DNA of 61,894 nt, the filler included, from Dimorphilus gyrociliatus (lineage: Eukaryota; Animalia; Annelida), in NCBI GenBank assembly GCA_904063045.1. It is 5 parts of 5 records of this genome, joined end to end, with 100 filler letters (N's around TTAATTAATTAA, not from the genome) between each part and the next. Parts side by side here need not be neighbours in the genome. Positions count along the whole stretch, not along the records: positions 1 to 17,659 come from CAJFCJ010000215.1; 4 more parts are not named here. One strand, given 5' to 3'. Below are positions 1 to 17,659 of this stretch, in pieces. A model generated the notes under the pieces. The model saw nothing but the letters and a program-made list of their open reading frames with translations, was not told the origin of the DNA and did not search any database. Every line of letters begins with the position of its first letter. Positions within the stretch are counted from its first letter, which is position 1. The translations under genes and the position numbers were made by a program.

Positions 1-99
1 ATACAACGCCTATCCTCTTTTTCGATATTCATTAAAGATCACATATGAATACTATTTCCATGGGGAACTCTCCAGAATTCAACAAAGGTTATAAATATA

Positions 100-700
100 T
101 TTTAAAATGATTGATTGCTTTTAAAAGTTTGTTTTTCGCTACAAATTGTATAACCAAAGGTCCCAATCGTTAGCAAATATTCTCGAAAAGGATTTTATTT
201 TGAGCGTCCATCAAAAACACCACATATAGATAACGGAAGAGAGTTTATAAACCAAAATAGAAACTGTGTGTTTAAATTTTAATATAGAACATATTTCAAG
301 GTGTTATAACATACTTTATAGAACGATTAAATGAGAATTAGAAAGGCTTTGGACAACTCTGATAACTCGATTATTGTTCAAGATAAAGTGATATATCAGT
401 ATGACAACAGTAAACACAGTCTACAGGGGAAAAAGTATTTGTACTTTCCATAAACGTTTATCCAAATAACTTTAATAAAAAAAGGGGGATCTTTTCAAAG
501 TGCTAAGAATAGTTACCTAAATTACAGAGCAGTTATATAAATAAATTCAATGCAAGGCTCATTAATAACAACCAAATTATTATAGGACAACAATGTTTAT
601 TAGTTATATACTTTGATAATAATATTAACACAAGACATTGAATATTAACAAACACTTAATAATGACAAGTTTTATATTGTGATAATAAAATTCCCATATA
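100..700 (+). pseudogene. Decayed retroviral-type (rve) integrase remnant
   Basis: GATAACGGAAGAGAGTTTATAAAC near 229-252 reads DNGREFIN, the second catalytic Asp motif of rve integrases. The region has many stops and an inverted paralogue at ~9250-10250. Boundaries approximate. Confidence 0.6.
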
Positions 701-1065
701 GAAGCAAAACAACAATAAAAAGTTGCATCTTAATATGTTGAGAGCGTTTTATTCAGTAAAGTAGACATTGTCTGGTATTTTTTATATTTTCCAAAAAAAA
801 ATTTATGTAATTAATTCTGGAAATATAGACATAAAAAACCGGGGGTAAAAGCTCATATTTAGATTTTTTGAGGGTTAAACACTCCGTACTAATTTAACAT
901 CTATTTAATTTTACCTTACCAAAATAAATAAAATAGGAGTAAACGTAATTTAATCAAAGAATTTTATACTAATTTAATAGAATGTTTATTTACTTAACAT
1001 TATTTGACATATTTTTATACAAAAACACAAGATTTTCTTATTTTTAAGTAGATTTTTAATAAAAA

Positions 1066-2149
1066 TCATGAATTAATACGCGGATTCCCCATTGATTGTA
1101 TTGTCCCTTCATTGTCTTTAGTTAGTTCACTTTCCTGATAAATTAAATAAGCGAATTGTTTAAAGTCTTTAACTGAATTACACATGGAAGATTCAAGGTT
1201 TCTGATCAAATCATCTTTTTGAACTTTAGCAACTTGGGAGACTTGTTTAGATAGCTTTAAATAGTGACCTTTAAGGTTGCGATCACTCTCTTTTATAGGT
1301 ATTCCATACTTACTACGTAAACTATCAATGTTATGTATTATTTTATGATTATCGATATGACATTTCCAATCTTCTACAGTACTTTTATCTAAAAAGTAGA
1401 AAAATATCACGTTGGGCGGTTTTAATCCCTCTTTATTATTTTCAATACTTATTTCTCTGTACACATCTTTAGGAATGTATTTCTCTTTGCTAGTAACATC
1501 ATCAATTTCTTCATATATACAATTTTCTAGATTTAATAAATATTTAGGCAATTCATCATTTGATTCTATTAATTTACCAAATACTTTGTTTTGTTCCTCA
1601 TAAAAAATGTCTTCAAATTCAGATAAACTTTTGTCATATTTTATTAGAAGCTCGATTGCGCAGTTATAAGCACCTTTATTGCTACTATGATTAGAATCAC
1701 TCACATTAGGTTCGAAAATAGGCTCGATATCCTTATAAGGAACTTTGTGTGTTTTAAAATGTGCTTTTTTAATTTCTATTATTATACTTTGCAGTTCTTT
1801 TATAAAGCCTAAAATTGTACGATACCATCTAATGATGTTCGAAATTTCATGATGGAGTCTGTTTAGAACAGCGTAGTTGTAATAAAAACTTGTTTCATCA
1901 ATTTTAAAGTCATGGGTAATTTTTTTTTTCCAGGTTATCCCTAATATAATTGAAAAATTCGCTGTTGTAGTCACGAAGTAGCAGCATTTTAGGAAATCCA
2001 TAGTCAAAACCTTCTATAAATTGTTGTCTTTCATCTTCTTCAAAGGATTTTATGTTTAGCAGTGTACTTAAGTCAACGGGTGCTACAGAACTACTTTCGC
2101 TTACTGCACTTTTTATAGACATTAAGTTTAGAAATAATTTGAAAATCAT
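1066..2149 (-). CDS. Orphan family-A protein, putatively secreted, split by a frameshift in a homopolymer
   Basis: ORF 1910-2149 (hydrophobic N-terminus MIFKLFLNLMSIKSA, CCC motif upstream of the ATG) joins ORF 1066-2007 across the T-run at ~1920-1929 (DNLEKK/ITHDF). Paralogues lie at ~4020-4560 and ~10715-15891. Confidence 0.65.
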
Positions 2150-2639
2150 TAAGGGACAAAAATTGATCTTATTTAAACATTTATAATATTCTAAAAATAG
2201 AAAAGCCGCTGATTTTATAAGACCCTTAATTAAATAATATCAAAACAATCACTGGTATTTTCATAAAAATGATCTGTTAGCTTATCAAAGCTAGAAATGC
2301 TCTTGGATTTCTGTACAGTTTAAAAATAGGGATAGTTTGAACCTATATCCAACTTGAAAAATACCAAATGTCTGATTTGTTAAAAAATCATATCGTTTAA
2401 ATGAAAATATAAACTTTTAATATATAGATTAAAACTATACTATCATTAAATTGTAGTAAAATAGAAAAAGCTCGATACTCATATCAGCCTATATAATATG
2501 TAAATCTTTAAATATAAGCATTGATATTATTGGGAAATTATATTAAAAAATTATAATAGAATAAATTATAACAATTCAAACACTTCGTCTCCCATTCTAT
2601 GACGAGTGTTGGATTCAGAAATTAACTCATTTAAAAATT

Positions 2640-3530
2640 GGTAAAGTTTTGTTGTTTTCACGCTTTTTCCAACTTTAACTTGTCTTTTAAACCAGTTGTG
2701 AAATACTTAATTTATTTATTTATGGGTGCCATTTTTGGATACAAAATTGTATTTATCACATACTGTGTCATGCATATAACTATACTCGTTAAAACGTAAA
2801 ATAAGCACCGTGTTCATCGGTGGATAGTATAGAAATACCTATAACTTGGTCACATATTATATGATAAATTGTTTATTCCCTTTCATTTGGGTCAGCCTGT
2901 ACTTTTGCGACGAAAATTTCATTACTAAACTCTATTATATATAGAAAGTCTGTCCTATTACTGAAAACACGACTTCTATGTGCTTTTATACTATAATTTG
3001 ACATAGTTATATCAACTCGTATTGTTTTACCAAGCACCCTAATTTATTTGAAAAATCAGCTAACGGTATTAATGCCTCAGTAGACCCTGAACTTTGAATA
3101 CACTATTTATATTAATATGGAATTATTTTACAATGATGTAATATGGCATTTATAAGAAATATTTTAATGTTATTCGTAAAAAGTTTTAATAGGCAGAGAT
3201 AATAAGTCAAATAAATTATCAAAACGGACATTAATACGCTTTTTTACTTAAACAGTAGCTACGAAGACATCTTCACGTCTAATTTTCAGAAGAGCTGGTA
3301 TAGTTTTCTAACATCATATGCGAATTGCATATGGGACAGCTTACCCTTGCTTTAAGAGTTTTATTTTTAAACAAGAAAATCATAAAAGAGTCATCTAATG
3401 ACTCTGTTAAAAAATTTGTTGAAGGATTTAGTAGAAAACATATTAGTCCACCTTGATTTTGATGTTTATAGTTTTTTAGTGACTTTGGAGGCATTTTTTT
3501 GTTAAAAGTTACTTTTATTATCATTAATTA
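2640..3530 (-). pseudogene. Degenerate Merlin (ISXO2/IS1595-like) transposase
   Basis: Minus-strand fragments LKARVSCPICNSHMML (N-terminal Cys motif), GISILSTDEHGAY (second Asp motif) and KYNFVSKNGTH...WFK, with multiple stops. A GGTAAA end at 2640 resembles the Merlin terminus at 16193. Confidence 0.55.
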
Positions 3531-4019
3531 CCCATTTGAATAACCATGTACTAGATATGATCGGATTATTTGAGGGAAAAAACATAATTGCTGTTGATAA
3601 ATTAAAGAACTAAAGCCCTTGCCCCTTTTTTTTTGCTTTAATGAATCTTTGTGTGGTTTAAAAATAAAAAAGGGGGACTTTTGGACTTGATCCCAGCTTT
3701 TAAGCTAACGATTTCCAAGTCTTAATTAATTAAAAATTCAGATTATCTTTCATATAATGGAACCATCAAACCCTTATTTATGATGTTAAAACACTCTAAT
3801 ATCATAAAAAAGGCGGGCTGATTTATTCTAATAATCATCTTAAAAAATTAGGAATTCTTCTAAAATGAATACAAAATAAAAAAGCGACATAAAAGAGCTT
3901 TTGATTTTTTGCGTACACATTAAAAAGTGTTCAAGTGTCTACTTCTGATCTTAGAGTGAATATTGATGGATGGTCACGTAAAATTTCAAAAATTCATTGT
4001 TTTTTATTGAATCTTTTGA

Positions 4020-4560
4020 TAAAAATCATGAGATAGTACACAGGCCCCTTCCATTTATACGGTCAATTTTTTTTCATCAGTAATGATTATATTTCAACAA
4101 GTTATCAAAGGAACGAAGATCGTAAACTCTATAGCTGGATGTCACATGGAAGACTTAAAATTTACCGATTGAATCATCTTTATTCTGGGGAATGGGCAGC
4201 CGCTTTAGAAAGCTGTTTGGATAACTTTAAATAGTAATCTTTAAGATCGAACCTATTTCTTTTAAAGGTATGCCATGTCTACTACGTAAACCATCAATAT
4301 TATGTATCATTTTATGGTCATTGGTACGATATTTCCAACTTTCTAAGCATTTTTATATGAAAAGTCGAAAAAACAACATTAGGTGATTATAATACCTTTC
4401 TGGGTTTCCTATGCTTACTTCTCTAAAAATACCTTATGGATGTACTCACTTCTTAAAATAGGCGGAAATCGTACGAACCCTTCCTTTTCTTTACAAAAAA
4501 GGCGTTTAGCTAGTTCATTATTTGATTCTCTGAACTTATTCACTGCTTTATTTCGATTAG
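4020..4560 (-). pseudogene. Degenerate paralogue of family A (3' half)
   Basis: Nucleotide similarity to 1066-1600, e.g. ctacgtaaaccatcaatattatgtatcattttatg vs ctacgtaaactatcaatgttatgtattattttatg; frameshifted. Confidence 0.65.
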
Positions 4561-6138
4561 ACTAAAAAGTCGATAAAAATTGCTTTCAGCAGGCCCCCTT
4601 AAAATATAACATTAAAGAAAACAAAAATATAATTAAATTCAAAATGATATTTTGTGCGGTTTTTAAGAAAAAATAGTTAAAAATGGGGCTCGACTTTTAT
4701 AAATAAATAATTGTTTTAAACAAGATTTATATTGTCCTTCATGCTACAGCTGTGTTTTTTAGGAAGTCTTTTAGTCATCTCCATTGATACTCAATGTTTT
4801 TTATGTATTTCTGGTATATTTTTGTTTTTAAAGTTAGTTTTATGCTTAATTGTAAAAAATCATGATATCTTATGTCATTATATCTTGTTTATTAATTAGT
4901 AATAACCCCCCCCTTCTTTATGTTTACTAATCATTTTTTAAAGAGTTAATGAATTTTTTCTATAAATTTAAAAAAGCGGGGGGGGGTCTGATTCTATAAA
5001 GACCATAAACTACTCATTAAATCTTCTAAAATTGTATTTTCGCCTATTAACAGCACCTCAATCAATTTCTATAATTAAATCAGTGGTTCTATATTAGTTA
5101 ACCTCCTCTTTGCAATTTTACTTCTAATTAGAAAATCACTGTTTTATAAAGCTTATAATCTTATTATTCAATTAAATATACCTATAACTAAAGTTTTTAT
5201 GGACTATTCAAGGTTTATAAAAATTGTTTTTTTTAGTGGAAAGCTAGCCATTATGAACTGTCTCCTTATTCCTACCAGATTTCTTTGATTTAAATATCCA
5301 AATTAAACCATCTGTATTATTATGTGATACTAAATTTTCATCAATTTTACATTTTTTTTGGAATGATTTTTTTTCAAAATGTTTAATTCAGTCAACCAAG
5401 AAAAAAAGTGTTCGGATAAATCATTTTTTATTGTAACTTGAAGCTCATTATTAACACTAGGAAGCAATATAGTCCAATTTAAAGGACGCCCTAAAAGCAA
5501 TTTTTACCAGTTTCTTATGTTGAGTATATAAAAAATACAACTTAATATAAGAGAGCTCCTTTATTTATTTTCACTAGGAATTGAGTATTTTAGGAGTTTG
5601 AAAGTCCAAATTTAATTTTTACTTAATTTGTTCTATGAACATGTTTTATTAAGTTGAAACACTTCTTAAAGCTTTTATAGCAGCAAAATATGATAATAAA
5701 AATATCTTATGATATCAAATCACACATGTCTGTTGATTTTGTCTAGTTAAAACACAATTTTTTTTAAAGAATTTTAAACTAATTAATAATAAAGCTTATC
5801 GACACTTTATTACAATGTTTTAGAAAATCATAAATTCAAAAATTTGTATAAGAAATAGTTTTTTGGATGAGTGACAATTCATTATTTACAAATATGATCT
5901 CACAATCATCTATCTCGTAAATTAAAGACATTTAAGGATTGAAGTATAATGTCTTTACACTTTTAATTTTTTTTTCCATTTACAGAACTAATGCAATTAC
6001 CAAATATAGAATGTAAAACACACTTGGATGATTTTTGTATATCAAATGCTATTATTATTTTCAGAATTACATTTATGGAAATATCACTTCCATTTTTAGT
6101 CATTGTTATATATTTAAGAAAGTAAAAAAAGGGGGGTA

Positions 6139-8283
6139 ATGGGGAATATTGTACTGTTAAGCGTCTTCTTGGTACAAATTGTTACTTATAGAGAACTAAT
6201 AAATGAAGAAAGCTTATCATTATCATCTAATTTTGATAAAATACAAAACAAAGAATCAAATTATAATTCTAGAACTAACTTATGTACTAAAGAAAATAGA
6301 AAAAGCGATTCTCTTTCAAAGCTTGATTTTGCTCGAAAATTTTCATCAGAACAAGAAAATACTTATTCTTCAAAAGATTTTTATCTAGATGATATTTTTG
6401 ACTTAGAATACTTAGAGGTGATAAATTTAGAAGATTGTGGAGTAAATAAATTTAGATGTAGCGGGCATCTTAAAAGTTTAATTTTAAACAAAAATAGCGG
6501 ATTAAGCCGATACAGTTTTGAAAAAATATTCGAGATTAAACATTTAGAGAAACTTTCATTAAAATCCTGTTTTTTGGAGAAAGGATTACTAAAAGATGTA
6601 CATAAATTAGAAAATTTGCAGTATCTAGACTTGTCTTCTAATATGATGTTATCCAAGAAAGATTTTTCAGAAATTTTTAGTTTAAAAAAACTTGAAGTTC
6701 TAATTCTAAACGATTGCAGGTTAAAAGAGTCATCATTAGAGGGGATAATTCAATTACAAGGACTTAAAAGGCTTATATTAGATTATTATCCAAAAATAAA
6801 TTCTATCGAAATAAGGGAAATATGCCAAATTGAGTCGCTTGAAGAACTTTCACTTATCGGTAGTTTAAGCAACTTTGTTACCCAGTTAAGCTTTAAGAAT
6901 TTAGAGAATCTTGTGAATTTAAATATTAGCAAGAATCCATATTTACTTTTAGATATTAAAGATATAAGAAGTTTATCAAAACTTGAGGTGCTTCACATAT
7001 CAGGGAAATTGTCATATAGATGCAATTTACAAGCGATCTATAATTTAAAGAAACTCAAATCTTTATGTATTACTAATTGTAAAAGATTAGTTTACAACGA
7101 TATAAATCCTAATTTGACTCTAGCAAATTTAACAGCTATTAAAAAACTAGACTTAAGAGGCATTGAGATTTCTTCAAATGACATATTTAAGAAAATATAT
7201 AAATTAACATCTCTTGAAGAATTATATCTTGTAAATCCAATATTTACGAATATTGATAAATTAACTAAACTAAAGTTCTTACATATCGAATCCATGAATA
7301 TGCGTTCACCAGACTTCCGTTATATTACATTGTTAAAAAAATTAGAAACCTTAATATTATTTAAATGCATGATTTCTGAAGCAAAAATAGCTGATATAAA
7401 CAAACTAGAGAGCTTAAAGAATTTACAGATGCATCTAAAATCAGACTATTATAGAAACATGTCAACTAAATTATCGATATTTCCTTTTTTAGAGACATTT
7501 AAGTTTTCTAGTGAACATCATAGGTGTAGTTCATTCTTTAAAGAAATGTTAAGCTCTACTTCACTAAAATCACTGGCTATATACCATAAAGAGGTATCTA
7601 AAGATGAGATGCAAATGATTTTTAACCTTTCATCATTGAGAGAACTTTTTTTCTACCAACAAAATATCAAGCTAACCAATTTTTATGGTATAAAAAAACT
7701 AAAAAAATTGGACGTACTTTATTTAAATTCCGTAGGAGTGCTAACCTACGAAAATTTAAATTCAATAATGCAGCTTAAAAGTTTAAAACACCTAAGTATT
7801 ATTAATTGTACTGTTGATTTTTTTGGTAATTGTCCGATCGAAAATCTTACAAATTTAAGAAGCTTAGATATGGATCAAACTGCAACACCTCTAAGAATAG
7901 TCATTCCTAAGATACTTGGATTAAATAACCTTGAAAGACTTACAATATTTGGTGATGACACAAGAGGCGGATTATTTTCACATATAAAAAATCTAAAAAA
8001 GCTAAACATCTTAAAAGTTTATGGTAATATAAAACTATCAGAAAGGGATTACGATGATATTATACAGCTTAAATCTTTATTCATGTTCAAAACTTGGTTA
8101 AAAAACTTTGAAAATCTAATTTATGCCAAAGAAATAGACCCAGGAATTTTTGAGTCTAGTAATGGATTGAAAATTGCTGAAATTTTTAGTAAAGCATCAT
8201 CACAAAAAAATGATAAAGATAATCAGACTTTAGAAAGGATAAAAGATAGAATTAAAAAGAGATGTCTCATTTATACTCACTGA
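6139..8283 (+). CDS. Leucine-rich repeat protein with a hydrophobic N-terminus (microsporidian-type expanded LRR family)
   Basis: 714-aa intron-less ORF with many LxxLxLxxN/C repeats, a signal-peptide-like N-terminus and GGGGGG 2 nt upstream of the ATG. Confidence 0.9.
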   Translation: MGNIVLLSVFLVQIVTYRELINEESLSLSSNFDKIQNKESNYNSRTNLCTKENRKSDSLSKLDFARKFSSEQENTYSSKDFYLDDIFDLEYLEVINLEDCGVNKFRCSGHLKSLILNKNSGLSRYSFEKIFEIKHLEKLSLKSCFLEKGLLKDVHKLENLQYLDLSSNMMLSKKDFSEIFSLKKLEVLILNDCRLKESSLEGIIQLQGLKRLILDYYPKINSIEIREICQIESLEELSLIGSLSNFVTQLSFKNLENLVNLNISKNPYLLLDIKDIRSLSKLEVLHISGKLSYRCNLQAIYNLKKLKSLCITNCKRLVYNDINPNLTLANLTAIKKLDLRGIEISSNDIFKKIYKLTSLEELYLVNPIFTNIDKLTKLKFLHIESMNMRSPDFRYITLLKKLETLILFKCMISEAKIADINKLESLKNLQMHLKSDYYRNMSTKLSIFPFLETFKFSSEHHRCSSFFKEMLSSTSLKSLAIYHKEVSKDEMQMIFNLSSLRELFFYQQNIKLTNFYGIKKLKKLDVLYLNSVGVLTYENLNSIMQLKSLKHLSIINCTVDFFGNCPIENLTNLRSLDMDQTATPLRIVIPKILGLNNLERLTIFGDDTRGGLFSHIKNLKKLNILKVYGNIKLSERDYDDIIQLKSLFMFKTWLKNFENLIYAKEIDPGIFESSNGLKIAEIFSKASSQKNDKDNQTLERIKDRIKKRCLIYTH

Positions 8284-9119
8284 ATCTACACCAAATCGTC
8301 CAGATGATCCATTTTGGTACAATATGCCTAATTAAATAAAATTATTTATTACTTTTTTTGTTTTCAAATTGAAAAGCAGTTTATGGAAAGACTTCCAGCT
8401 GGTCTAAATCAGTTAGCCTACAAGCCAACTAGTGCTAATTCTCATAAAAACTTTAAAACTCTGTTTTTATTTAATTATTGAAAGCACTCTAAAAACATAT
8501 AAAAGTTTATTAAAAGCCAAAAATAAAGTCGTGTCAAAGAACCAAAAAAAGATATCAAAAAAGATCGAAACCATTGTTTGATTTAGAATATTCTAATACT
8601 CGAGAAAACTGTCTTTATTGTCGATAAATATATATATTTTTTAATATATAATTTCTAAGGTATATTCTATATTAGATTCTCTGTTTTTAAGAAAATATTT
8701 TGAGTTTTTCCACCTGTTCCTCATTAACTGTGTACTAATTTTACAATTTTAGTTCTATAAAGTATTTTTTATAGATTATTTTCTTATGTTTAATATTAAA
8801 TGATTGGATGCAGTTATAGCCTTCAAAATGCTTGTTATCATTTTCTATTTTTTCTTATATTACGTTAGATAATTTTTTATAATTTATATTTAGTTTTCGT
8901 CTTTGTTAGAGTGAAAAAACATGTCTGTTGTCCTAAAACATCTACCACAACCCAACTATCTTTTATTATTTTATCTTATTGTTCTTACGTTTGGAGAGGC
9001 TACTTTCATCAATTTTCACCTCTTTTTCAATACCACCTATACGACGACATACTTCTTTTTTTTATTTTAGACCATAATAAGTATTATATACATTTAAGTA
9101 CATATACAGAATTGGCTAA

Positions 9120-10620
9120 ATAAAAAATCCCTATAAAAATACTTTTACTCATATTTTGTTTATTTTGGTAAGGTAAAATTGAATATATAATGAATTGAAT
9201 GGTAGTTTCTATTCCCTCAATAAAAAAGTAAATTTTACCACTACTTCTTGTGTCTATACTTCCAGAATTAAATACAGAGCTTTCAAAAGCCTTTTTTTAA
9301 GAAATATAAAAAATATTAGACAGTGTCTACTTTATTGAACAAATCGCTCTAAAAAATATCTAGACACAACTTTGCTATTGTTGTTTTCATTCTGTATGGG
9401 AATTCTATTATCACAAAGTAAGTATTGTCATTATTAGGCGGTGTTAATGAATGATGTCTTGTGTTATCAAAGTATTTAAAAGTATTTAGCTAATAAATGT
9501 TGTTTTCCTATTATAATTTGGTTGTTATTAGTGATCTTTGTATTATATTCATTTATATTAGTCTCTCGTAATTGAGGTTGTTTTTTATAGCACTTTGGAG
9601 AGATCAAATATCATTATTAAAGTTTATTGGATCAAGATTTCTGAATATCAGATATAATTTGACTCCTGTAGACTGTGTTTTCCCTTATTATAATGATTAT
9701 TCACCTTATATTGAACACTAAGCCAGTTAACAGAAGATTCCAAAATCTTCCTAATTCTTAATTTAAACGTTCTTCTGAATATTTCTATGACACTCTAAAA
9801 ATGTTCTATTTTAAAGTTTGAACACATATTTCTTACATTTTGGTTTATAAATTCTCTTCCATTATCTGTATAGAGAGTTTTTCAAAGAACCCCAGAATAA
9901 AACACTTTTTTGAAAATCTTTACTACCAATTTGGTGCTTTTATTTCATAGCTGAAGATATACTTTAAAAAGCAATCAACCATATTTAAATCACATTCATA
10001 TTCTTTGTTGTATTCATTTCAACTACTCAAATCAACAATATTCACGTGTAATCTTTCATGAATATCAAGTACTAGAAATAGCCGTTATAGATCTTTGATC
10101 ATTGATATTTACCTGCTTTTGGTATACTTTACATCTATTAATACTTTCTGTGATATCAATTAGCTCTTACACCTTGGTTTGACATCTATGACAAGATGAA
10201 CGTATTTGTTTAATAAAAGATACTTTTAAACCAGTTTAAAATCGTATACATACCTTTTTTTGATCCTATACTACCCAACTAGTAGAATTTAATAACAAAA
10301 TCTCTTTGATTTTCCTTCCAAGCTGTTTAATATTTTACCATGATTCATAAACTCTATAATATCAAATTTTCGTCTGATTTGATATACTTGGCATTCTATC
10401 TAGCCAATGGTGAAGATTAAAGTTCTAAAAAAAAGGAGCTTTTATTCAGTATTTTTCTTATTTTTTAATAAAAAAGTACTTAGAAAAGAATTATACCGAA
10501 AATTCTTATACATTTTTTTTGGGAATAGAAACAGCCCTCCAATTCATTATATACTTAATTTTACCATACCAAAATAACAAAATAGGCGGAAAAAGAATAT
10601 ACTCAAGTGTATTTTTTACT
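9120..10620 (-). mobile_element. Decayed integrase-containing element with putative inverted termini
   Basis: Minus-strand TLYTDNGREF at ~9850-9885. ~9150-9235 is the approximate reverse complement of ~10510-10590 (core caattttaccttaccaaaataaacaaaata / taattttaccataccaaaataacaaaata). No TSD found. Confidence 0.5.
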
Positions 10621-11275
10621 AATTTAATAGAATGTTTATGTTTTTAGGGTTATCTAACATATTTTAATATAAAGGATCTGTATTTTATTGTCTTGAGTGA
10701 CTTTTTGATAAAAATAATGAAGTAACAGACGGATTCGATATTGATTGTACTGGAAATTCATTATCTTTAGCTATTATCCCATCTTTGATTATTATATCAA
10801 CAAATCTTTTATAGTCTCCAACTAAATTACATATGAATGCCCCAGCGTTATCGATCAAATCATCTTTTTGTATTTTAGCAATTTCAGAGATTGTTTGGAT
10901 AACTTTAGATAGTGACCTTTAAGATTACAATTGTTGCAACAAAAAGTGTCCGGGTTGCAAAAAGTGTCCGGCCTTAAATAGCATTTATTTATAAAAATAA
11001 AGTGATTTGTAAACTTTTTTATTTTTTTTTCAATTATAAATTTACTAAAAAGAGTAAGAGCTTCGTGACAAAAAGTGTCCTGGTAATTTAATAGGGGTCT
11101 CCTTTAATAAATTAATAGGAAAAAATGGATAAGTGTCAATGGCTGACAAAAAGTGTCCGGGGTATTTTTTTAGAGATTTTATCAACATTATAAGGTAAAT
11201 TTAATAGATATTATGATTTTAATTAAAAATATAGTTTTTCTGAATTTTTTAGATAAAAATTTACTTATAAAGTAT

Positions 11276-11278
11276 CCC
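11276..11278 (+). promoter_or_regulatory. CCC motif directly before the ATG (microsporidian-type start signal)
   Basis: AAGTATCCC-ATG. Comparable CCC/GGG motifs precede the ATGs at 2149, 6139, 14605, 57171, 60051 and 60632. Confidence 0.55.
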
Positions 11279-12457
11279 ATGTCTACAAATTTACTAATTG
11301 AGAACGATGAAGAAAAAAATAATATAATTATTTATCTATCTAATAAAACATATCCTATGAACTTTGACGATTCCCAAAAGAGAGTGTTACGTAGGAAGTG
11401 TAAAAACCTAGTGTTAAGAAATGGACTATTGAAGATGGTTGATGATAGGATAGAGAAAGACATAATTCTAAGATCAGAAATAAATAAAAGAAAAGAAATA
11501 ATAATGGAGAAGCATAACGTTGATCATGCCCGGGGAAGAGTTGTGTTTAATAGAGTAAGACAAAGATATGTGGGGATTACCATAAATGATGTTAATAGTC
11601 TTTTAGAAAGCTGTGAAAATTGTTTAATGGAGACGCCTCCAGCTTTTGTTGAATCTATTACACCTATAATACCATCATATCCAAGGGAAAGGTTAATAGT
11701 TGATACTGTTGATCTCAGTGTATATTCCCAACATAACAATGGATTGAAATACGTTTTCACAATGATTGATAGTTTTACTAAATTTGGATGGGTTTACACG
11801 GCTAATAACAAGAACTCAGAGACCTTTTCTGCTATTCTAGAACAGCACTTTTATAAAGAAGGAACTTGGGAAATTTTTCATAGTGATAATGGAGGTGAAT
11901 TCAGAAACAATAGAGTGGAGAGTATTTTAACCAGATTTAATGTAATTTCTACACATGGCAGACCATATCATCCCCAATCACAAGGGCAAGTTGAGCGTTT
12001 TAATCGTACAATTAAATCGAGAATAAGAAAATCTTTTGGCTTTAACCAATTTGATTGGCATAATCATATTGATAGGATTGTATATTATTACAATAATACA
12101 GCTCATAGAAGCACAGGAATCAAACCATTTCTGTTATTTAAAGGATTCGATAGCGAGCTGTTGAATAATATGAATACAACAACTTTCTCTGATGAAGCAA
12201 GATTAAGTTTATTAAACTATGTAGAAACATATCGCAGAGAATTTTCCATTAGATCATCTCAGCAAATAAGAATAGGGGATAGAGTGTTACTGGTTAAGCC
12301 ATATAGCCCAACTATAAGAAGAAGGGCCCTTGAGTCACTTTATTTTGATGATATTTATGTAGTTGAAGAAATAAATGGTGAAAGAATCATTATTAAAAGT
12401 CAAAACTCTGAAGAGACAAAACAAACTTCAATACGCTGTGTGAAGAAAATTATCTAA
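11279..12457 (+). CDS. Gypsy-type DDE integrase/transposase
   Basis: HHCC Zn domain (KHNVDH...CENC), rve core D (IVDTVD), D (HSDNGGEF), E (QVERFNRT) and a C-terminal IGDRVLL tail. The likely start is the ATG at 11279, directly preceded by CCC; the tracked start at 11213 lies inside the TIR. Confidence 0.92.
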   Translation: MSTNLLIENDEEKNNIIIYLSNKTYPMNFDDSQKRVLRRKCKNLVLRNGLLKMVDDRIEKDIILRSEINKRKEIIMEKHNVDHARGRVVFNRVRQRYVGITINDVNSLLESCENCLMETPPAFVESITPIIPSYPRERLIVDTVDLSVYSQHNNGLKYVFTMIDSFTKFGWVYTANNKNSETFSAILEQHFYKEGTWEIFHSDNGGEFRNNRVESILTRFNVISTHGRPYHPQSQGQVERFNRTIKSRIRKSFGFNQFDWHNHIDRIVYYYNNTAHRSTGIKPFLLFKGFDSELLNNMNTTTFSDEARLSLLNYVETYRREFSIRSSQQIRIGDRVLLVKPYSPTIRRRALESLYFDDIYVVEEINGERIIIKSQNSEETKQTSIRCVKKII

Positions 12458-12962
12458 AAAATTCAGAAAAACTATATTTTTAATTAAAATCATAATATCT
12501 ATTAAATTTACCTTATAATGTTGATAAAATCTCTAAAAAAATACCCCGGACACTTTTTGTCAGCCATTGACACTTATCCATTTTTTTCCTATTAATTTAT
12601 TAAAGGAGACCCCTATTAAATTACCAGGACACTTTTTGTCACGAAGCTCTTACTCTTTTTAGTAAATTTATAATTGAAAAAAAAATAAAAAAGTTTACAA
12701 ATCACTTTATTTTTATAAATAAATGCTATTTAAGGCCGGACACTTTTTGCAACCCGGACACTTTATGCTACAACAACAATTAGTCTCTTTTGTAGAAATA
12801 CCATACTTACTACGTAAACTATCAATGTTATTTATTATTTTATGATTATTGATATGACATTTCCAATCTTCTACAGCGCTTTTATCTAAAAAGTAGAAAA
12901 ATACCGCGTTAGGCGGATTTAGTACTTCTCTATTATTTTCAATACTTATTTCTCTGTATATA

Positions 12963-15243
12963 CAGTCTGTCTCAAAATTCTTGCAAACCCTATTTTAATA
13001 CAAACTTTTAATACCAAAATTTCTGAAACTTAATATTTGAAACAATCACCATAATATGAATAAATTTATTGTTTATTATATTTTTTAATCTACAAAAATG
13101 ACGGGGTTTTATCAATTTGTGATTAAAAGTGTCTCAAAATTCTTGCAAAAAAACATAAATATGCTCAGAAACCATATTTAGGGAAAAAGTCTCCAGTAAA
13201 AAAGAATGAGCGTTCATGATAAAAAATGCATAAATATATTTTTTATTTTATGAAAACGACTTTTCATATCGCTAACGTTGATTTTTCCAAATTTGGAAGT
13301 TTTTGTGAATTAACGTATCATTGGTGGTTTTATGAAACCAACTTTATATCAAAATGGAGATAATAGACTTTTATAAAGACATTTGTATACATATAAATAA
13401 TAAACGTATGCAAAATTGGGGAGTTTTACAGAGAATTTCTTAATCAATTTGATGATCAATACATAAATATTGATTTTTTGATAGGGTCAAAAAAATAGAC
13501 TAAGCTCAATTAATCTAAAATATGATATGAATTATAAATATATAAATTTTTTTAAATAACAAAAGACTTTATACCTGTTTAAAGAAGTTTAATATTTTAA
13601 AGCTTTCCCCTTTTCTCTAATACATGACTTGATCCTTTTATAAAAGCTGTCAGATAGACTTACACATAAACTCACTGGTATACTATACCATATTCTTCTT
13701 ATACAAGCCTTAAGTTCATCAATATTTCGAGGGTTCGATTCAGATACACGTCTTTTTACATAATCCCAAAGGTTCTCGATGGGGTTGAGATCTGGTGATT
13801 GTGAAGGCCAAGGAACTGTTTTTATATTACGTCTCAGAAGAAAGTCTCGGGTTATTTTAGCGTTATGTTTTGGGTCATTGTCTTGTAATAAAAAATAATT
13901 ACTCATTCCCCACCTCTCACTTGATTTAATCAAATTATCTCTTAATATCTCTATATAATCAATAGCAGTCATTCTTTTTTCAATAAACTTTATTTCACCA
14001 ACACCATATAAACTAAAACACCCCCATACCATAACCGATCCTCCTCCAAACTTCACTGTTTTTATTAAATTTTTATCTTCTAAACCTTTACCATTCAACC
14101 TCCATACTTTTTGTTTACCATCATGGGATATCAAATTAAATTTCGATTCATCGCTAAATATTATCTTATTTTTAAACATTTCGTAGTCAAATAGAAGCTT
14201 TTTGCATATATCGAATCTCCTTTCTATATGTATTGGTTTTAAAAGAGGCTTCTTTATCGGAGAATGTGCATTAAACCCTCTATCATTCAAAAAGCGTTTG
14301 ATGGTATCCTTCGATAATTTAACGTTATGAGTTTCCTTTATATTTGAACTCAGTTTTCTTAAGCTTGTAAAAGGATCTTTTGTAATTTTTGAAATTATCT
14401 TTGTTGATATGTTAGAAGTGACTATCTTACACCTGCCTCTCTTTTGACTCACCTTTTTTGGCTCAATGTTATCTTTTTTTTTAACTATACGACTTATTGT
14501 TGATATTGAGCGCTTAGTTATTAGCGAGATCTGTGTCATTGACTTTCCTGCTTCATATAATCCTAAAATTTTTCCTTTTTCGATGTCTGTAAGGTTTTTT
14601 ATCATAAAAGGGGTTTAAATTTTTGTAAACAGGTATAAAGTCTTTTGTTCTTTAAAAAAATTTATATATTTATAATTCATATCATATTTTAGATTAATTG
14701 AGCTTGGTCTATTTTTTTTGACCCTATCAAAAAATCAATATTTATGTATTGATCATCAAATTGATTAAGAAATTCTCTGTAAAACTCCCCAATTTTGCAT
14801 ACGTTTATTATTTATATGTATACAAATGTCTTTATAAAAGTCTATTATCTCCATTTTGATATAAAGTTGGTTTCATAAAGCACCAATGATACGTTAATTC
14901 ACAAAAACTTCCAAATTTGGAAAAATCAACGTTAGCGATATGAAAAGTCGTTTTCATAAAATAAAAAATATATTTATGCATTTTTTATCATGAACGCTCA
15001 TTCTTTTTTACTGGAGACTTTTTCCCTAAATATGGTTTCTGAGCATATTTATGTTTTTTGCAAGAATTTTGAGACACTTTTAATCACAAATTGATAAAAA
15101 ACCGTCATTTTTGTAGATTAAAAAATATAATAAACAATAAATTTATTCATATTATGGTGATTGTTTCAAATATTAAGTTTCAGAAATTTTGGTATTAAAA
15201 GTTTGTATTAAAATAGGGTTTGCAAGAATTTTGAGACAGACTG
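12963..15243 (-). mobile_element. Tc1 DNA transposon with ~620-bp TIRs, apparently intact
   Basis: CAGTC...GACTG ends flanked by TA (12961-12962 and 15244-15245); TIRs ~12963-13581 and ~14626-15243 with few mismatches. An inner copy of GTCTCAAAATTCTTGCAAA at ~13130-13148 gives an IR/DR-like layout. Confidence 0.95.
13589..14605 (-). CDS. Tc1 transposase, DD34E
   Basis: N-terminal HTH, then IIFSDES, LQDNDPKH and DLNPIENLW, with 34 residues counted between the second D and the E. CCCC motif upstream of the ATG. Confidence 0.95.
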   Translation of the reverse strand: MIKNLTDIEKGKILGLYEAGKSMTQISLITKRSISTISRIVKKKDNIEPKKVSQKRGRCKIVTSNISTKIISKITKDPFTSLRKLSSNIKETHNVKLSKDTIKRFLNDRGFNAHSPIKKPLLKPIHIERRFDICKKLLFDYEMFKNKIIFSDESKFNLISHDGKQKVWRLNGKGLEDKNLIKTVKFGGGSVMVWGCFSLYGVGEIKFIEKRMTAIDYIEILRDNLIKSSERWGMSNYFLLQDNDPKHNAKITRDFLLRRNIKTVPWPSQSPDLNPIENLWDYVKRRVSESNPRNIDELKACIRRIWYSIPVSLCVSLSDSFYKRIKSCIREKGKALKY

Positions 15244-16192
15244 TATCTTTAGGGATGGATTTCTTTATGATAATATCAAAAGATTTTTCAAATTCCATCT
15301 TTTCAAGATATAATAAGTGTTTAGGCAGTTCATCATTTGATTCTATCAATTTACCAAATACTTCGTTTTGCTCTTAATAACCCCCGCTTCAAATTCAAAT
15401 AAACTCTTTTCGTATTGTGCTAAAAGTTCAATTGCATAATTCACCCCCTTTATTACTTTATGATATGAATCACTTATATTAGGGAGAATAGGTTTCCCTT
15501 CCTTAAAAAAACCTTTATAGATTTTAAACTGTTTTTTCTATTTCTTTTATTAAACTTTGCAATTCTTTTATATATAAAACAAATACTTTAAAACCATCTA
15601 TGATATTCATAAACAGATAGAAAAAATCGAACAAATCAACGTAATTAAAATAAAAATTCATTTGATCAATTTTGTAATTACTCTTACATTCATCTTTATA
15701 ATATTTAATATTAACACTTTTATAGTTACGAAGTATAAAGATTATACGAATCCATTTCTAAGTTGTTCTCTTTCGTCTTCTTTATATGATCTTTTATTTA
15801 CTAGAGCGCCAAAATTAACGATTACCACGGAGCTTCTCTCATTATCCGCACATTTTATAGATAATAAATTTATAAATAAATTGAAAATCATTAAGAATCA
15901 AAAGTTGATCTTATATTCTTAAAATGGATAAGTAGATGATTACAGGAGATCTCAGATTAAGTTCCTTTCGCAGAATTACATAACATTTAAACTAGAAAAT
16001 TTATGTTTTCTCATCAATTTTGAAATAACTTTCAGGTAAAATGATTTATAAGATTTACTTAATTAATGATTTAGATAAAATTTAAAAAATCAAACTAACT
16101 AAACCTTATTTATTGTTCTTGAAAAAAAATAGATTCATTATCCTATCAATTATCTTAAAAGATTAAAAATTCTATTAAAATAAAGACAAATA

Positions 16193-17169
16193 GGTAAAAT
16201 TTGCTTTGGGACGGCCTTAAAATTAAATTATTCTGCCCCCTAATGGTTTTAACACGTAGAGAACTTTATGAGAAAACAATCTGTCGTGAAAGTTTCTTGT
16301 CATGGTTGATGGATTTAAATATACCGAAAAAAAGTCATAAATGTAAAATAAACATGGGTTTAATTAATCATCATAGAGGAGATGGTTATATTTGGTCTTG
16401 TAAGTCCAAGAAGTGTAATAAAAGTAAATTATCAGTTCGTACAGGGTCTGTTTTTGCTGTAATCAAGGCCCCACTTGAAAAAATTATTTTTATTATTTAT
16501 GACTGGTGCGCTAAGACCAACTATGATAGGATTAAAAGAGAATACAACATCAATTATAAGCTATTCAGCACAGTTTTAGGTTTGATAAGACGATCCTATA
16601 AAAAAAAATAGCAAGCTGATCAGAGGGGATGGAAAAGTGGTTGAAATAAATGAAAGTGCACTAAGCAAGCGTAAATACAATATAGGAAGAGGATTAGAAC
16701 AGGTATGGGTTGTTGGAGGTATATGTAGGATAACGAAAGAGTGTTTTTTCGAAATAACCAAAAAAAAGATAGTGCATCTCTCGATAAAATAATCTTAGAT
16801 AATGTTAAAGAATATTCCGTAATCATAACGGATGAGTGGAAAGGCTATTATAACGTAAAAACACATAACTATACTCACTTTACAGTAAAGCACAAAACTG
16901 AATTTCTTTGTAAAGAAATGATGGAAGTCCACACTCAGAATATTGAAAACCAATGGAAATGGCTAAAAAAGTACCTTAAATCCCGAGGAAGTAATATAAA
17001 ATGCAATCTTAAAAATCATATTAATGATTATTTATTTCTAAAAAAATAAAATCCTTATTTAGAAATTATTAACTCGATGAAAGTTCTTGAAATAAAAAAA
17101 ATTATTTAAAAATGATGCTGGTTTAATTTTATACTCAATTTTAAGGGGGTCCCCAAAGCAAATTTTACC
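16193..17169 (+). mobile_element. Merlin (IS1016/IS1595-related) DNA transposon, disrupted
   Basis: ~32-bp TIRs GGTAAAATTTGCTTTGGG...CCCAAAGCAAATTTTACC; 8-bp imperfect TSD GACAAATA/TACAAATA (16185-16192 and 17170-17177). Transposase fragments VEINES (D to N), IITDEWKGY and HTQNIENQWKWLK, with two frameshifts at A-runs (~16600 and ~16765). Confidence 0.85.
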
Positions 17170-17337
17170 TACAAATACAAAAAGAGTGACATAAAAAAGT
17201 TCCGAGTTTTTTTGTTCACCTAAAATGTGCAATTATACTGTTTTAATTTAAATAATGATGATTAACTTTACCTTTATATATCATTATATAAATTTAGCTA
17301 TTTAAAGTAACTTTTTTAATAAAAATTAGATTAGTTA

Positions 17338-17659
17338 TCAATAATAAGAAAGGTCTTTTTCAAGTTTTATCTGTTCTCTAGCATCCTTGAATACCCAATT
17401 TTCCAAACCTTTAAGATCTTCGTATATTTTATAATCTTTAAAGCATTCATGCATATTCAAAGGGGTTTCTTTATTAGAAATGATACTTTCATAGTCTACA
17501 GCTTCCTCAAGCACTTTAAATACTTTATAACGAAAGCCATCTGTGAAAGAATAAAGCCTGGCGGATGGAGACGATCGCGATGTGTATATACCATATTTGC
17601 GATAGTATCTTTCAGGATCAAAGACTCGTATCCTATAACGCCCAATGCAATTTCTCAAA
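17338..17659 (-). CDS. Hypothetical protein, C-terminal part (cut by contig end)
   Basis: Open 106-aa frame running off the contig end; family not recognised. Confidence 0.5.

Follow-up and report, generated by a model that had tools for sequence, protein, structure and literature searches.

A compact inverted-repeat transposon with a retroviral-type integrase, probably of the Ginger2/TDD type, in a microsporidian-like genome

Introduction

The Ginger DNA transposons are bounded by terminal inverted repeats (TIRs) and use a Gypsy-like integrase as their transposase. As described by Bao, Kapitonov, and Jurka (2010, PMC2836005), Ginger1 elements produce a 4-bp CCGG/CCGT target-site duplication (TSD) and encode a protein of 500-800 amino acids (aa) that has YPYY and GPY/F motifs and, at its C terminus, an OTU or Ulp1 domain, with or without a PHD domain. 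Ginger2/TDD elements have TGTNR tips, a TSD of 4 bp, or of 5 bp in TDD-4/5, A+T-rich targets (RTATAY in the 4-bp group), and a transposase that has the HHCC and DDE motifs and lacks GPY/F and YPYY. Ginger2 is very diverse, with core identity down to 30%, and is placed near Polinton (PMC2836005). Here we describe a 1,844-bp element with a single integrase-type gene in a 61,894-nucleotide stretch (the window) of five parts from the Dimorphilus gyrociliatus assembly GCA_904063045.1. All window coordinates given below refer to its first part, a 17.6-kb piece (positions 1 to 17,659, CAJFCJ010000215.1). We consider it highly probable that the element is an autonomous, intact-looking TIR DNA transposon of the Ginger superfamily, of the Ginger2/TDD type by its hallmarks, residing in a microsporidian-type genome.

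The HHCC motif is carried only by Ginger1, Ginger2, and the integrases of long terminal repeat (LTR) elements and retroviruses, and is absent from IS481EU, IS3EU/GingerRoot, Polinton, IS3, and IS481 (Kojima, PMC10045372). Ginger has been listed in Anncaliia algerae and Rozella (Muszewska et al. 2017). A later survey put its share of the mobilome at 1.9-5.6% in Hamiltosporidium and at about 1% in both A. algerae Undeen and Nosema bombycis (De Albuquerque et al. 2020, Additional file 5). Consensus sequences with only an rve domain have also been counted as LTR retrotransposons (Parisot 2014). A first-pass annotation of the window, made from the sequence alone, had left it to a search whether the family was new. 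We found no description in the literature of the structure of Ginger elements in microsporidia, nor of this family, but since Ginger in microsporidia had been tallied in two surveys (2017 and 2020) the novelty is modest. The element is a new compact member of the Ginger/TDD kind known since 2010, and involves no new principle.

Ends of the element and its insertion site

The first-pass annotation had proposed a 1844-bp element with TGT...ACA ends, TIRs of about 325 bp with three mismatches in their outer 11 bp, four internal repeats per TIR, a 5-bp ACAAT TSD, and an empty site recoverable from a paralogue in the same contig. Each of these points was borne out, as follows.

10932..12775, plus strand: whole element, 1,844 bp, TGTTG...CAACA
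10932..11256, plus strand: left TIR, about 325 bp
12451..12775, minus strand: right TIR, about 325 bp, with the stop codon of the integrase gene inside it
10927..10931, unstranded: left TSD copy, ACAAT
12776..12780, unstranded: right TSD copy, ACAAT, a perfect 5-bp match to the left copy
10940..10954, plus strand: subterminal repeat 1 of the left TIR, 9 nt from the tip
10958..10972, plus strand: subterminal repeat 2 of the left TIR, 27 nt from the tip
11069..11083, plus strand: subterminal repeat 3 of the left TIR, 138 nt from the tip
11147..11161, plus strand: subterminal repeat 4 of the left TIR, 216 nt from the tip
12545..12559, minus strand: subterminal repeat 4 of the right TIR
12624..12638, minus strand: subterminal repeat 3 of the right TIR
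12735..12749, minus strand: subterminal repeat 2 of the right TIR
12753..12767, minus strand: subterminal repeat 1 of the right TIR, one mismatch relative to the left copy
1180-1340 and 1243..1461, unstranded: overlapping stretches of the uninterrupted paralogue of the target locus (paralogous empty site), with a single 5-mer, GCGAT, at 1279-1283
4213..4345, unstranded: second, more diverged paralogue of the target, likewise uninterrupted

The two TIRs, which together make up 35% of the element, differ only by mismatches at TIR positions 6, 8, and 11 and by one 1-nt indel. The 14-15-nt subterminal repeat occurs eight times in the 17.6-kb piece, always within the element and four times per TIR, against 0.03 copies expected in shuffled sequence, and its copies start 9, 27, 138, and 216/217 nt from each tip. 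At the empty site, the left flank of the element is colinear with the paralogue at 1180-1340 up to GCGAT and the right flank is colinear from the same 5-mer on, with identities of 85-90%. Both flanks overlap this paralogue by exactly one 5-mer, as is characteristic of insertion at a 5-bp staggered cut, and the second paralogue agrees. The element is a DNA insertion into one copy of a repeated host sequence, and 5 bp of the target were duplicated in the process.

The target repeat, which may be a host gene family or another mobile element, is about 1.2 kb long and has copies at 961-2172 and 4213-4345 and one split copy, in three pieces (10611-10931, 12781-12962, and 15244-15914), that received both this element and the Tc1-like transposon described below. 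The copy at 961-2172 holds an open 313-aa reading frame (1066-2007, minus strand) that belongs to no Pfam family and for which no relative was found among 5.8 billion proteins.

The integrase-type gene and its product

The element has a single open frame (11213-12457, 414 aa), in agreement with the one open HHCC-DDE integrase open reading frame (ORF) of the first-pass annotation, although its start required refinement. The in-frame ATG at 11213, which would yield the 414-aa product, lies within the left TIR. Stand-alone relatives of 392-409 aa align from the methionine at 11279, a codon that is 23 nt inside the left TIR boundary (the TIR ends at 11256) and has CCC directly upstream. Judged from these alignments, ATG 11279 is the likely start codon, and the gene and the domains of its product would be as follows.

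11279..12457, plus strand: integrase-type transposase gene, 392 aa plus stop
11306..11464, plus strand: N-terminal helix/strand domain, residues 10-62, where the profile and fold matches to the Protein Data Bank (PDB) begin
11513..11623, plus strand: HHCC zinc-binding motif, H79, H83, C112, and C115, invariant in 14 of 14 family members
11681..12058, plus strand: RNase H-fold catalytic core, residues ~135-260, Pfam rve
12272..12454, plus strand: C-terminal beta-strand domain, SH3-like, residues 332-392, where the Ty3 profile match runs to profile position 395

Pfam searches of the integrase ORF returned rve (3.5e-13) and rve_3 and no other family, and no protease domain. The catalytic residues D142, D203, and E239 are also invariant in all 14 family members, with 35 residues between the last two, the D,D(35)E spacing. 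An AlphaFold2 model of the protein (mean predicted local distance difference test score, pLDDT, of 72, and 87-91 in the N-terminal domain) had an N-terminal domain, zinc-binding helices, an RNase H-fold core, and a C-terminal beta domain. In this model the N-terminal domain appears to be placed like the N-terminal extension domain of foamy-virus and Ty3 integrases. The solved intasomes used for comparison were those of Ty3 (7q5b) and prototype foamy virus (3l2q). The family profile matched prototype foamy virus integrase in the PDB over residues 44-298 (E 3e-27) and Ty3 integrase over almost its whole length (50-395), and the best Foldseek fold matches were the same intasome chains (E 4e-18 for the foamy-virus integrase). 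The C-terminal domain has no literal GPY/F motif, although an aromatic-x-V/I is kept at that place: GP[YF] was absent in 25 of 25 family members and present in Gypsy-like matches. In the family alignment there was no conserved proline in the ~40 residues before HHCC, where YPYY was judged from its published description.

Based on homology with the solved intasomes and on the arrangement of the sites, we propose how the element would move. A 392-aa integrase-type transposase would be made from a short-leader gene starting 23 nt inside the left TIR boundary, and would bind four 14-15-nt sites per TIR, two abutting at the tip and two further in. It would then pair the two ends in an intasome-like complex and expose the 3'-OH of the terminal CA, and D142, D203, and E239 would join both ends to the target across a 5-bp stagger. 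Host repair of the resulting gaps would yield the ACAAT duplication. The locus shows insertion with a 5-bp stagger; the element may be young, and its donor copy may be either cut out, as in cut-and-paste movement, or copied. The case for an intact copy is that the ORF is open and fully conserved and that the TSD is perfect. The near identity of the TIRs gives no measure of age, since LTRs, but not TIRs, are made anew whenever an element inserts.

Relatives of the element and the conservation of their ends

An exact-sequence search with the 414-aa ORF had no match. A word-index search identified full-length stand-alone relatives with 37-71% identity to the element's protein, and those that carry a species name are all microsporidian (Dictyocoela muelleri and Cucumispora dikerogammari). 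An exhaustive profile search added a relative from Enteropsectra breve with 31% identity. These proteins begin at their own methionine. Their genes come from different genomes, lie at loci that are unrelated to one another, and have individual TIRs and flanks. The ends read in named relatives were as follows.

D. muelleri, contig L001: arms 2671-2948 and 4328-4607, TGTTG tips
C. dikerogammari, contig L008: arms 2468-2928 and 4389-4850, TGTGG tips
C. dikerogammari, contig L002: TIR arms present, tips not resolved
E. breve, contig L091: TGTGG...CCACA, perfect 5-bp TSD TTTAT

The expectation that other copies would have the same kind of boundaries was therefore upheld in part: the relatives are TIR-flanked and the Enteropsectra copy has a clean duplication, but none could be read in the Dictyocoela and Cucumispora copies. 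No usable TIRs were found in the contexts of two further relatives, P0034 and P0065.

The arrangement of the ends is conserved more widely than their sequence. Contig L003 of the Logan set, which encodes a relative with 71% identity, aligns with the right arm of the element, ends at the same CAACA, and continues into an unrelated flank. Four repeats per end were found at nearly the same offsets from the tip in the element (9/27/138/216), L003 (9/27/138/214), L001 (9/26/107/192), and the left end of L091 (9/25/94/146). The sequences of these repeats differ between genera despite their near-constant offsets, and these comparisons suggest that they are transposase-binding sites that co-evolve with the protein.

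The ORFs of the element and L003 are 69.9% identical overall and agree at 76, 86.5, and 47% of first, second, and third codon positions, respectively, which indicates that the protein is under purifying selection. By comparison, the outer 125 nt of the TIR (L003 1229-1534 against 12451-12775 of the window) are 90-96% identical. Three causes could account for this high identity: the ends may be strongly constrained, the subfamilies may have exchanged ends, or L003, a short-read graph contig, may contain a chimeric join inside the TIR. The right-end bases at TIR positions 6 and 11 are common to the element and L003, and both differ from the left end of the element. Since the L003 right end has the same bases, at least two of the three tip mismatches represent an inherited left/right asymmetry and not decay.

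These data bear on whether the element could be intact-looking but immobile, that is, a fixed and possibly co-opted integrase gene kept by its host, whose TIRs are fossils. Only a single copy was seen, and purifying selection on the ORF would also be expected of a host gene. However, the relatives lie at unrelated loci in different genomes with their own TIRs and flanks, and synonymous sites are far less conserved than the tips of the TIRs and the positions of the sites, a contrast that makes sense only if the ends are used. In addition, the presence of two decayed related integrases in the same 17.6 kb is the usual pattern of a transposon family. On this evidence we regard a domesticated, immobile gene as improbable and favor a mobile TIR transposon.

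An identical 392-aa relative, with 71% identity to the element's protein, was assembled in 33 runs from a single accession series (Logan SRR26596527-SRR26596589, contigs L003-L007). Most of these contigs end about 20-80 nt from the ORF, as is expected if assembly breaks at inverted repeats. In Cucumispora L008 (2468-2928 and 4389-4850) and L002 (90-677), each TIR holds a long internal palindrome (e.g., L008 2473-2599 against 2692-2818, 98%), so that the ends are foldback-like. TIRs of this kind might be a source of the hairpin miniature inverted-repeat transposable elements that dominate microsporidian mobilomes.

Position of the family among retroviral-type integrases

The relatives from Dictyocoela and Cucumispora are named in GenBank as "Pro-Pol polyprotein", "Gag-Pol polyprotein", or "Transposon Tf2-9 polyprotein", and others as "hypothetical". 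Together with the Parisot 2014 count, these names substantiate the suspicion of the first-pass annotation that stand-alone integrase ORFs of microsporidia are easily labelled as retroelement debris. They would also fit a different origin of the element, as a solo integrase relic of a Ty3/Gypsy LTR retrotransposon whose inverted repeats are incidental, and this origin can be weighed by what surrounds the ORF and by where the protein falls among integrases.

As had been noted in the first pass, gag, reverse transcriptase (RT), and LTRs are missing around the ORF. Gypsy-type pol queries bearing RT and RNase H, taken from metagenome loci, matched the window only with their integrase part and only inside the integrase ORF, and the same pol-query search detected no RT or RNase H similarity anywhere in the 17.6-kb piece. 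No LTRs or long direct repeats were found around the ORF in the piece; the repeats there are inverted.

A profile search of 1.84 billion representatives identified 1,846 proteins with E<=1e-30. Stand-alone proteins of 340-600 aa that align from the first residue account for most of the 150 best matches, and the names of 20 representatives of this stand-alone assemblage were uninformative. Long RT-linked polyproteins also stood high in this search, and their low E-values hinted that the family is nested in Gypsy pol. The models of these proteins turned out to contain two or three integrase copies each, and they rank high because the copies add to the whole-sequence score. Whole-sequence HMMER scores thus overstate the closeness of multi-copy models, and the per-domain score should be used for ranking. 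When single-domain scores were used, 136 stand-alone proteins came out ahead of any long protein. The highest-scoring single domain linked to RT reached 140 bits, and the stand-alone proteins that outrank it reached 150-566 bits. The pairwise identity of the long pol models to the element's protein was 24-25%. The multi-integrase "polyprotein" models (P0058, P0076, P0088, and P0089) were from Globodera (2,120-aa), a frog, and a pseudoscorpion.

These rankings go against the nesting of the integrase within LTR-retrotransposon pol, which the first-pass annotation had named as a possible outcome, and against the relic. The high scores of the long proteins were sums over several integrase copies, and the piece lacks RT, RNase H, and LTRs. 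Moreover, the 325-bp TIRs directly abut a 5-bp TSD, for which there is a matching empty site, and the relatives start at their own methionine and are TIR-flanked too. A Ty3/Gypsy relic is accordingly extremely improbable in our judgment, and a TIR DNA transposon remains the preferred reading.

A neighbor-joining tree was built from the HHCC and core regions (226 columns, 161 sequences, 200 bootstraps). The microsporidian core family formed a split in 146 of the 200 bootstraps, the largest RT-free split holding the family contained 125 of the 161 taxa (bootstrap median also 125), and the transfer support for RT-linked integrases against the rest was 0.77. By sequence comparison, the family lies in an RT-free assemblage of integrases. 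This assemblage also holds HHCC-less integrases, a clade of ~500-aa proteins, and metagenome ORFs that join HHCC-rve to an OTU, PHD, or SUMO-peptidase-like domain.

One member of the RT-free assemblage, a 501-aa stand-alone rve protein, is encoded at 4001-5506 of L092 (Logan SRR33394791). The L092 contig is gene-dense and intron-free with most genes in one direction, and it encodes HNH homing endonucleases and an 837-aa collagen-repeat protein; its context looks virus-like.

Comparison with Ginger and other integrase-bearing families

The element has the described hallmarks of Ginger2/TDD that could be tested on it, as judged by the published features of named members and not by phylogeny. TIRs bound a single HHCC and DDE transposase gene with no RT, LTR, or protease domain. 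The Ginger2/TDD tips TGTNR...YNACA are matched by TGTTG...CAACA in the element, by TGTTG in Dictyocoela, and by TGTGG in Cucumispora L008 and Enteropsectra. The TSDs are 5 bp (ACAAT, and TTTAT in Enteropsectra), as in TDD-4/5, and both targets are A+T-rich, although these are only two sites in genomes of 26-33% G+C. The protein has no GPY/F, with the aromatic-x-V/I remaining at that place. It was on the TGTNR tips, the 5-bp TSD, the HHCC-DDE protein, and the TIR-flanked relatives that the Ginger-like assignment of the first-pass annotation was sustained.

Differences from Ginger2 were also found. The element is 1,844 bp long compared to 2,751-6,676 bp for listed elements, its TIRs are ~325 bp compared to 45-297 bp, it has four regularly placed sites per end and a microsporidian-type host, and its protein keeps an N-terminal extension and an SH3-like C-terminal domain that are colinear with Ty3 integrase.

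Several observations count against the assignment to Ginger2/TDD or against an intact, mobile element. Only one intact copy was seen, within the 17.6-kb piece, and its empty site is a paralogue (85-90% identical) and no allele. A clean TSD was not readable for D. muelleri L001 or C. dikerogammari L008, which are older copies, or for L002. The element is smaller and its TIRs are longer than those of any Ginger listed by Bao et al. (PMC2836005). The TDD-4 transposase, the Malassezia vestige XP_001728957.1, KRBA2, and SCAND3 were not among the search matches, and deep integrase trees are poorly resolved, as the transfer support of 0.77 illustrates. Lastly, the nearest metagenome relatives (27-32% identity) include OTU, PHD, or SUMO-peptidase proteins, recalling Ginger1; the metagenome scan with the family alignment found only relatives of 32% identity or less.

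Some of these points would fit a separate, as yet unnamed lineage of TIR transposons with HHCC integrases, which would lie outside both Ginger1 and Ginger2/TDD and have the same working mode. Such a lineage would center on microsporidia and many unlabelled environmental eukaryotes. The top 150 of the 1,846 profile matches are mostly stand-alone proteins aligned from residue 1 without informative names; the size, TIR length, and four-site ends of the element are outside the tabulated Ginger1 and Ginger2 ranges; and the SH3-like C-terminal domain keeps the aromatic residue of GPY/F, whereas Ginger2 is described as being without that module. Conversely, every testable hallmark agrees with Ginger2/TDD, including the 5-bp TSD of TDD-4/5, and Ginger2 is itself so diverse that its cores fall to 30% identity. 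We consider a separate lineage possible but doubtful, and Ginger2/TDD the better assignment. Slightly more tentative still is the idea that the microsporidian family and the more than 100 nearest unlabelled stand-alone clusters together stand apart from Ginger1 and Ginger2 as a third lineage of DNA transposons with HHCC integrases. If it were true, the 1.84-kb element would be the most compact autonomous representative of that lineage. As a minimal case in which a retroviral-type integrase is naturally paired with defined inverted ends that hold several sites, it would then offer a clean descriptive model of the relation of integrases to cut-and-paste transposases.

The likeness to Ginger1 lies in the TIRs, the TGTNR tips, and a transposase that is a Gypsy-like HHCC-DDE integrase. 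Such a protein, with an N-terminal extension and an SH3-like C-terminal domain, could belong to a Ginger1 element, and some distant metagenome relatives carry OTU, PHD, or peptidase domains. However, the TSD is 5 bp and A+T-rich and not the 4-bp CCGG/CCGT, the protein is 392 aa and not 500-800 aa, GP[YF] is missing in the 25 family members, YPYY was not recognized, and Pfam detected no protease domain, OTU or Ulp1 included. We therefore view a Ginger1 identity as very unlikely and retain Ginger2/TDD as the type. Two JGI metagenome sequences in the searched set also had inverted ends: L021 505-3007 is an HHCC-rve element bounded by TIRs of 107 bp, whose 703-aa ORF carries an OTU domain at its N terminus, and L032 1-2697 is a 2.7-kb HHCC-rve contig bounded by 46-bp TIRs starting TGTTA. 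Both appear from their sequences to be Ginger-type elements from eukaryotes.

The integrases of Ty3/Gypsy elements and retroviruses have the same domain order as the element's protein (N-terminal extension, HHCC, D,D(35)E core, SH3-like C-terminal domain), they share its CA-3' ends and a staggered joining of 4-6 bp, and they supply the best PDB sequence and fold matches. In contrast to them, the element's enzyme is free-standing between inverted, not direct, repeats, is accompanied by no RT, and has only ~25% identity to RT-linked integrases. It must also act on a chromosomal donor, whereas retroviral-type enzymes act on reverse-transcribed linear DNA.

Polinton/Maverick elements have a related rve core, and HHCC-less and ~500-aa stand-alone integrases fall in the same RT-free assemblage as the family. 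Polintons, however, lack HHCC, have a 6-bp TSD, and are 15-20-kb elements with protein-primed polymerase and capsid genes, whereas the element has HHCC, a 5-bp TSD, and one gene. The transposases of IS481EU, IS3EU/GingerRoot, and bacterial IS3/IS481 are DDE enzymes of the same broad clan, and some of these elements have TGT...ACA tips and short TSDs. They differ from the element in that IS3EU/GingerRoot has no HHCC, a 6-bp TSD, and mostly TA..TA tips, and IS481EU has no HHCC and a TSD of ~4, 15, or 25 bp; the TIRs of IS481EU and IS3EU are mostly <150 bp, compared to 325 bp in the element.

As genes deposited as Pro-Pol or Gag-Pol are here found to be TIR DNA transposons, the balance of class I and class II elements reported for microsporidian mobilomes shifts. 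The element is an unusually small and orderly integrase-type transposon. It encodes one 392-aa protein, and the four sites at each end have offsets that are conserved across genera, which makes it a good descriptive case for the long-discussed link of retroviral and LTR integrases with DNA transposases.

The host genome and neighboring elements

The genome carrying the element looks microsporidian-like, as the first-pass annotation had suggested. This view is based on the named relatives of the integrase, which are all microsporidian, on a G+C content of 24-32%, and on the CCC- or GGG-like signals that immediately precede the start codon in the integrase ORF, the Tc1-like ORF, and a leucine-rich-repeat (LRR) ORF, a signal of the kind reported as a microsporidian trait (PMC10815200). 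The mix of Merlin, Tc1, and Ginger elements in the piece is also typical of large microsporidian genomes. The 17.6 kb hold one intact copy of the element, two decayed integrase remnants, a Tc1-like element, and a broken Merlin remnant, a composition in which DNA transposons accumulate in the repeats of a large microsporidian genome.

The two decayed related integrase remnants lie at ~36-954 (plus strand) and ~9133-10072 (minus strand), in an inverted duplicated block whose arms are 73-85% identical, and have ~30-40% aa identity to family members. The remnant near 9.6-10.1 kb has at least one frameshift and about three in-frame stops, and only core residues ~132-278 are recognizable in it; the remnant near 0-0.5 kb has up to four stops and is truncated to the core. 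These remnants indicate that the genome has an older history of this superfamily.

An intact-looking Tc1/mariner-like transposon (12963-15243) lies 187 bp downstream of the element in the same host repeat copy. It has CAGT...ACTG ends, a TA duplication, and unusually long TIRs of ~630 bp (12963-13592 and 14615-15243), and its 338-aa transposase (13589-14605, minus strand) has the Pfam domains DDE_3 and HTH_Tnp_Tc3_2. The insertion site is uninterrupted in the paralogue at 1430-1520. A Merlin-type remnant at 16191-17171 has 41-nt inverted repeats (16191-16231 and 17131-17171) and a 102-aa ORF (16741-17049) that matches DDE_Tnp_IS1595 (1.8e-10), in which only the C-terminal part of the transposase is open. 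Finally, positions 6139-8283 encode a 714-aa LRR protein (Pfam LRR_14, 3e-24) with a GGGGGG run just before its ATG; it had only generic LRR relatives, the best microsporidian match being from Pancytospora epiphaga (E 8.5e-8).

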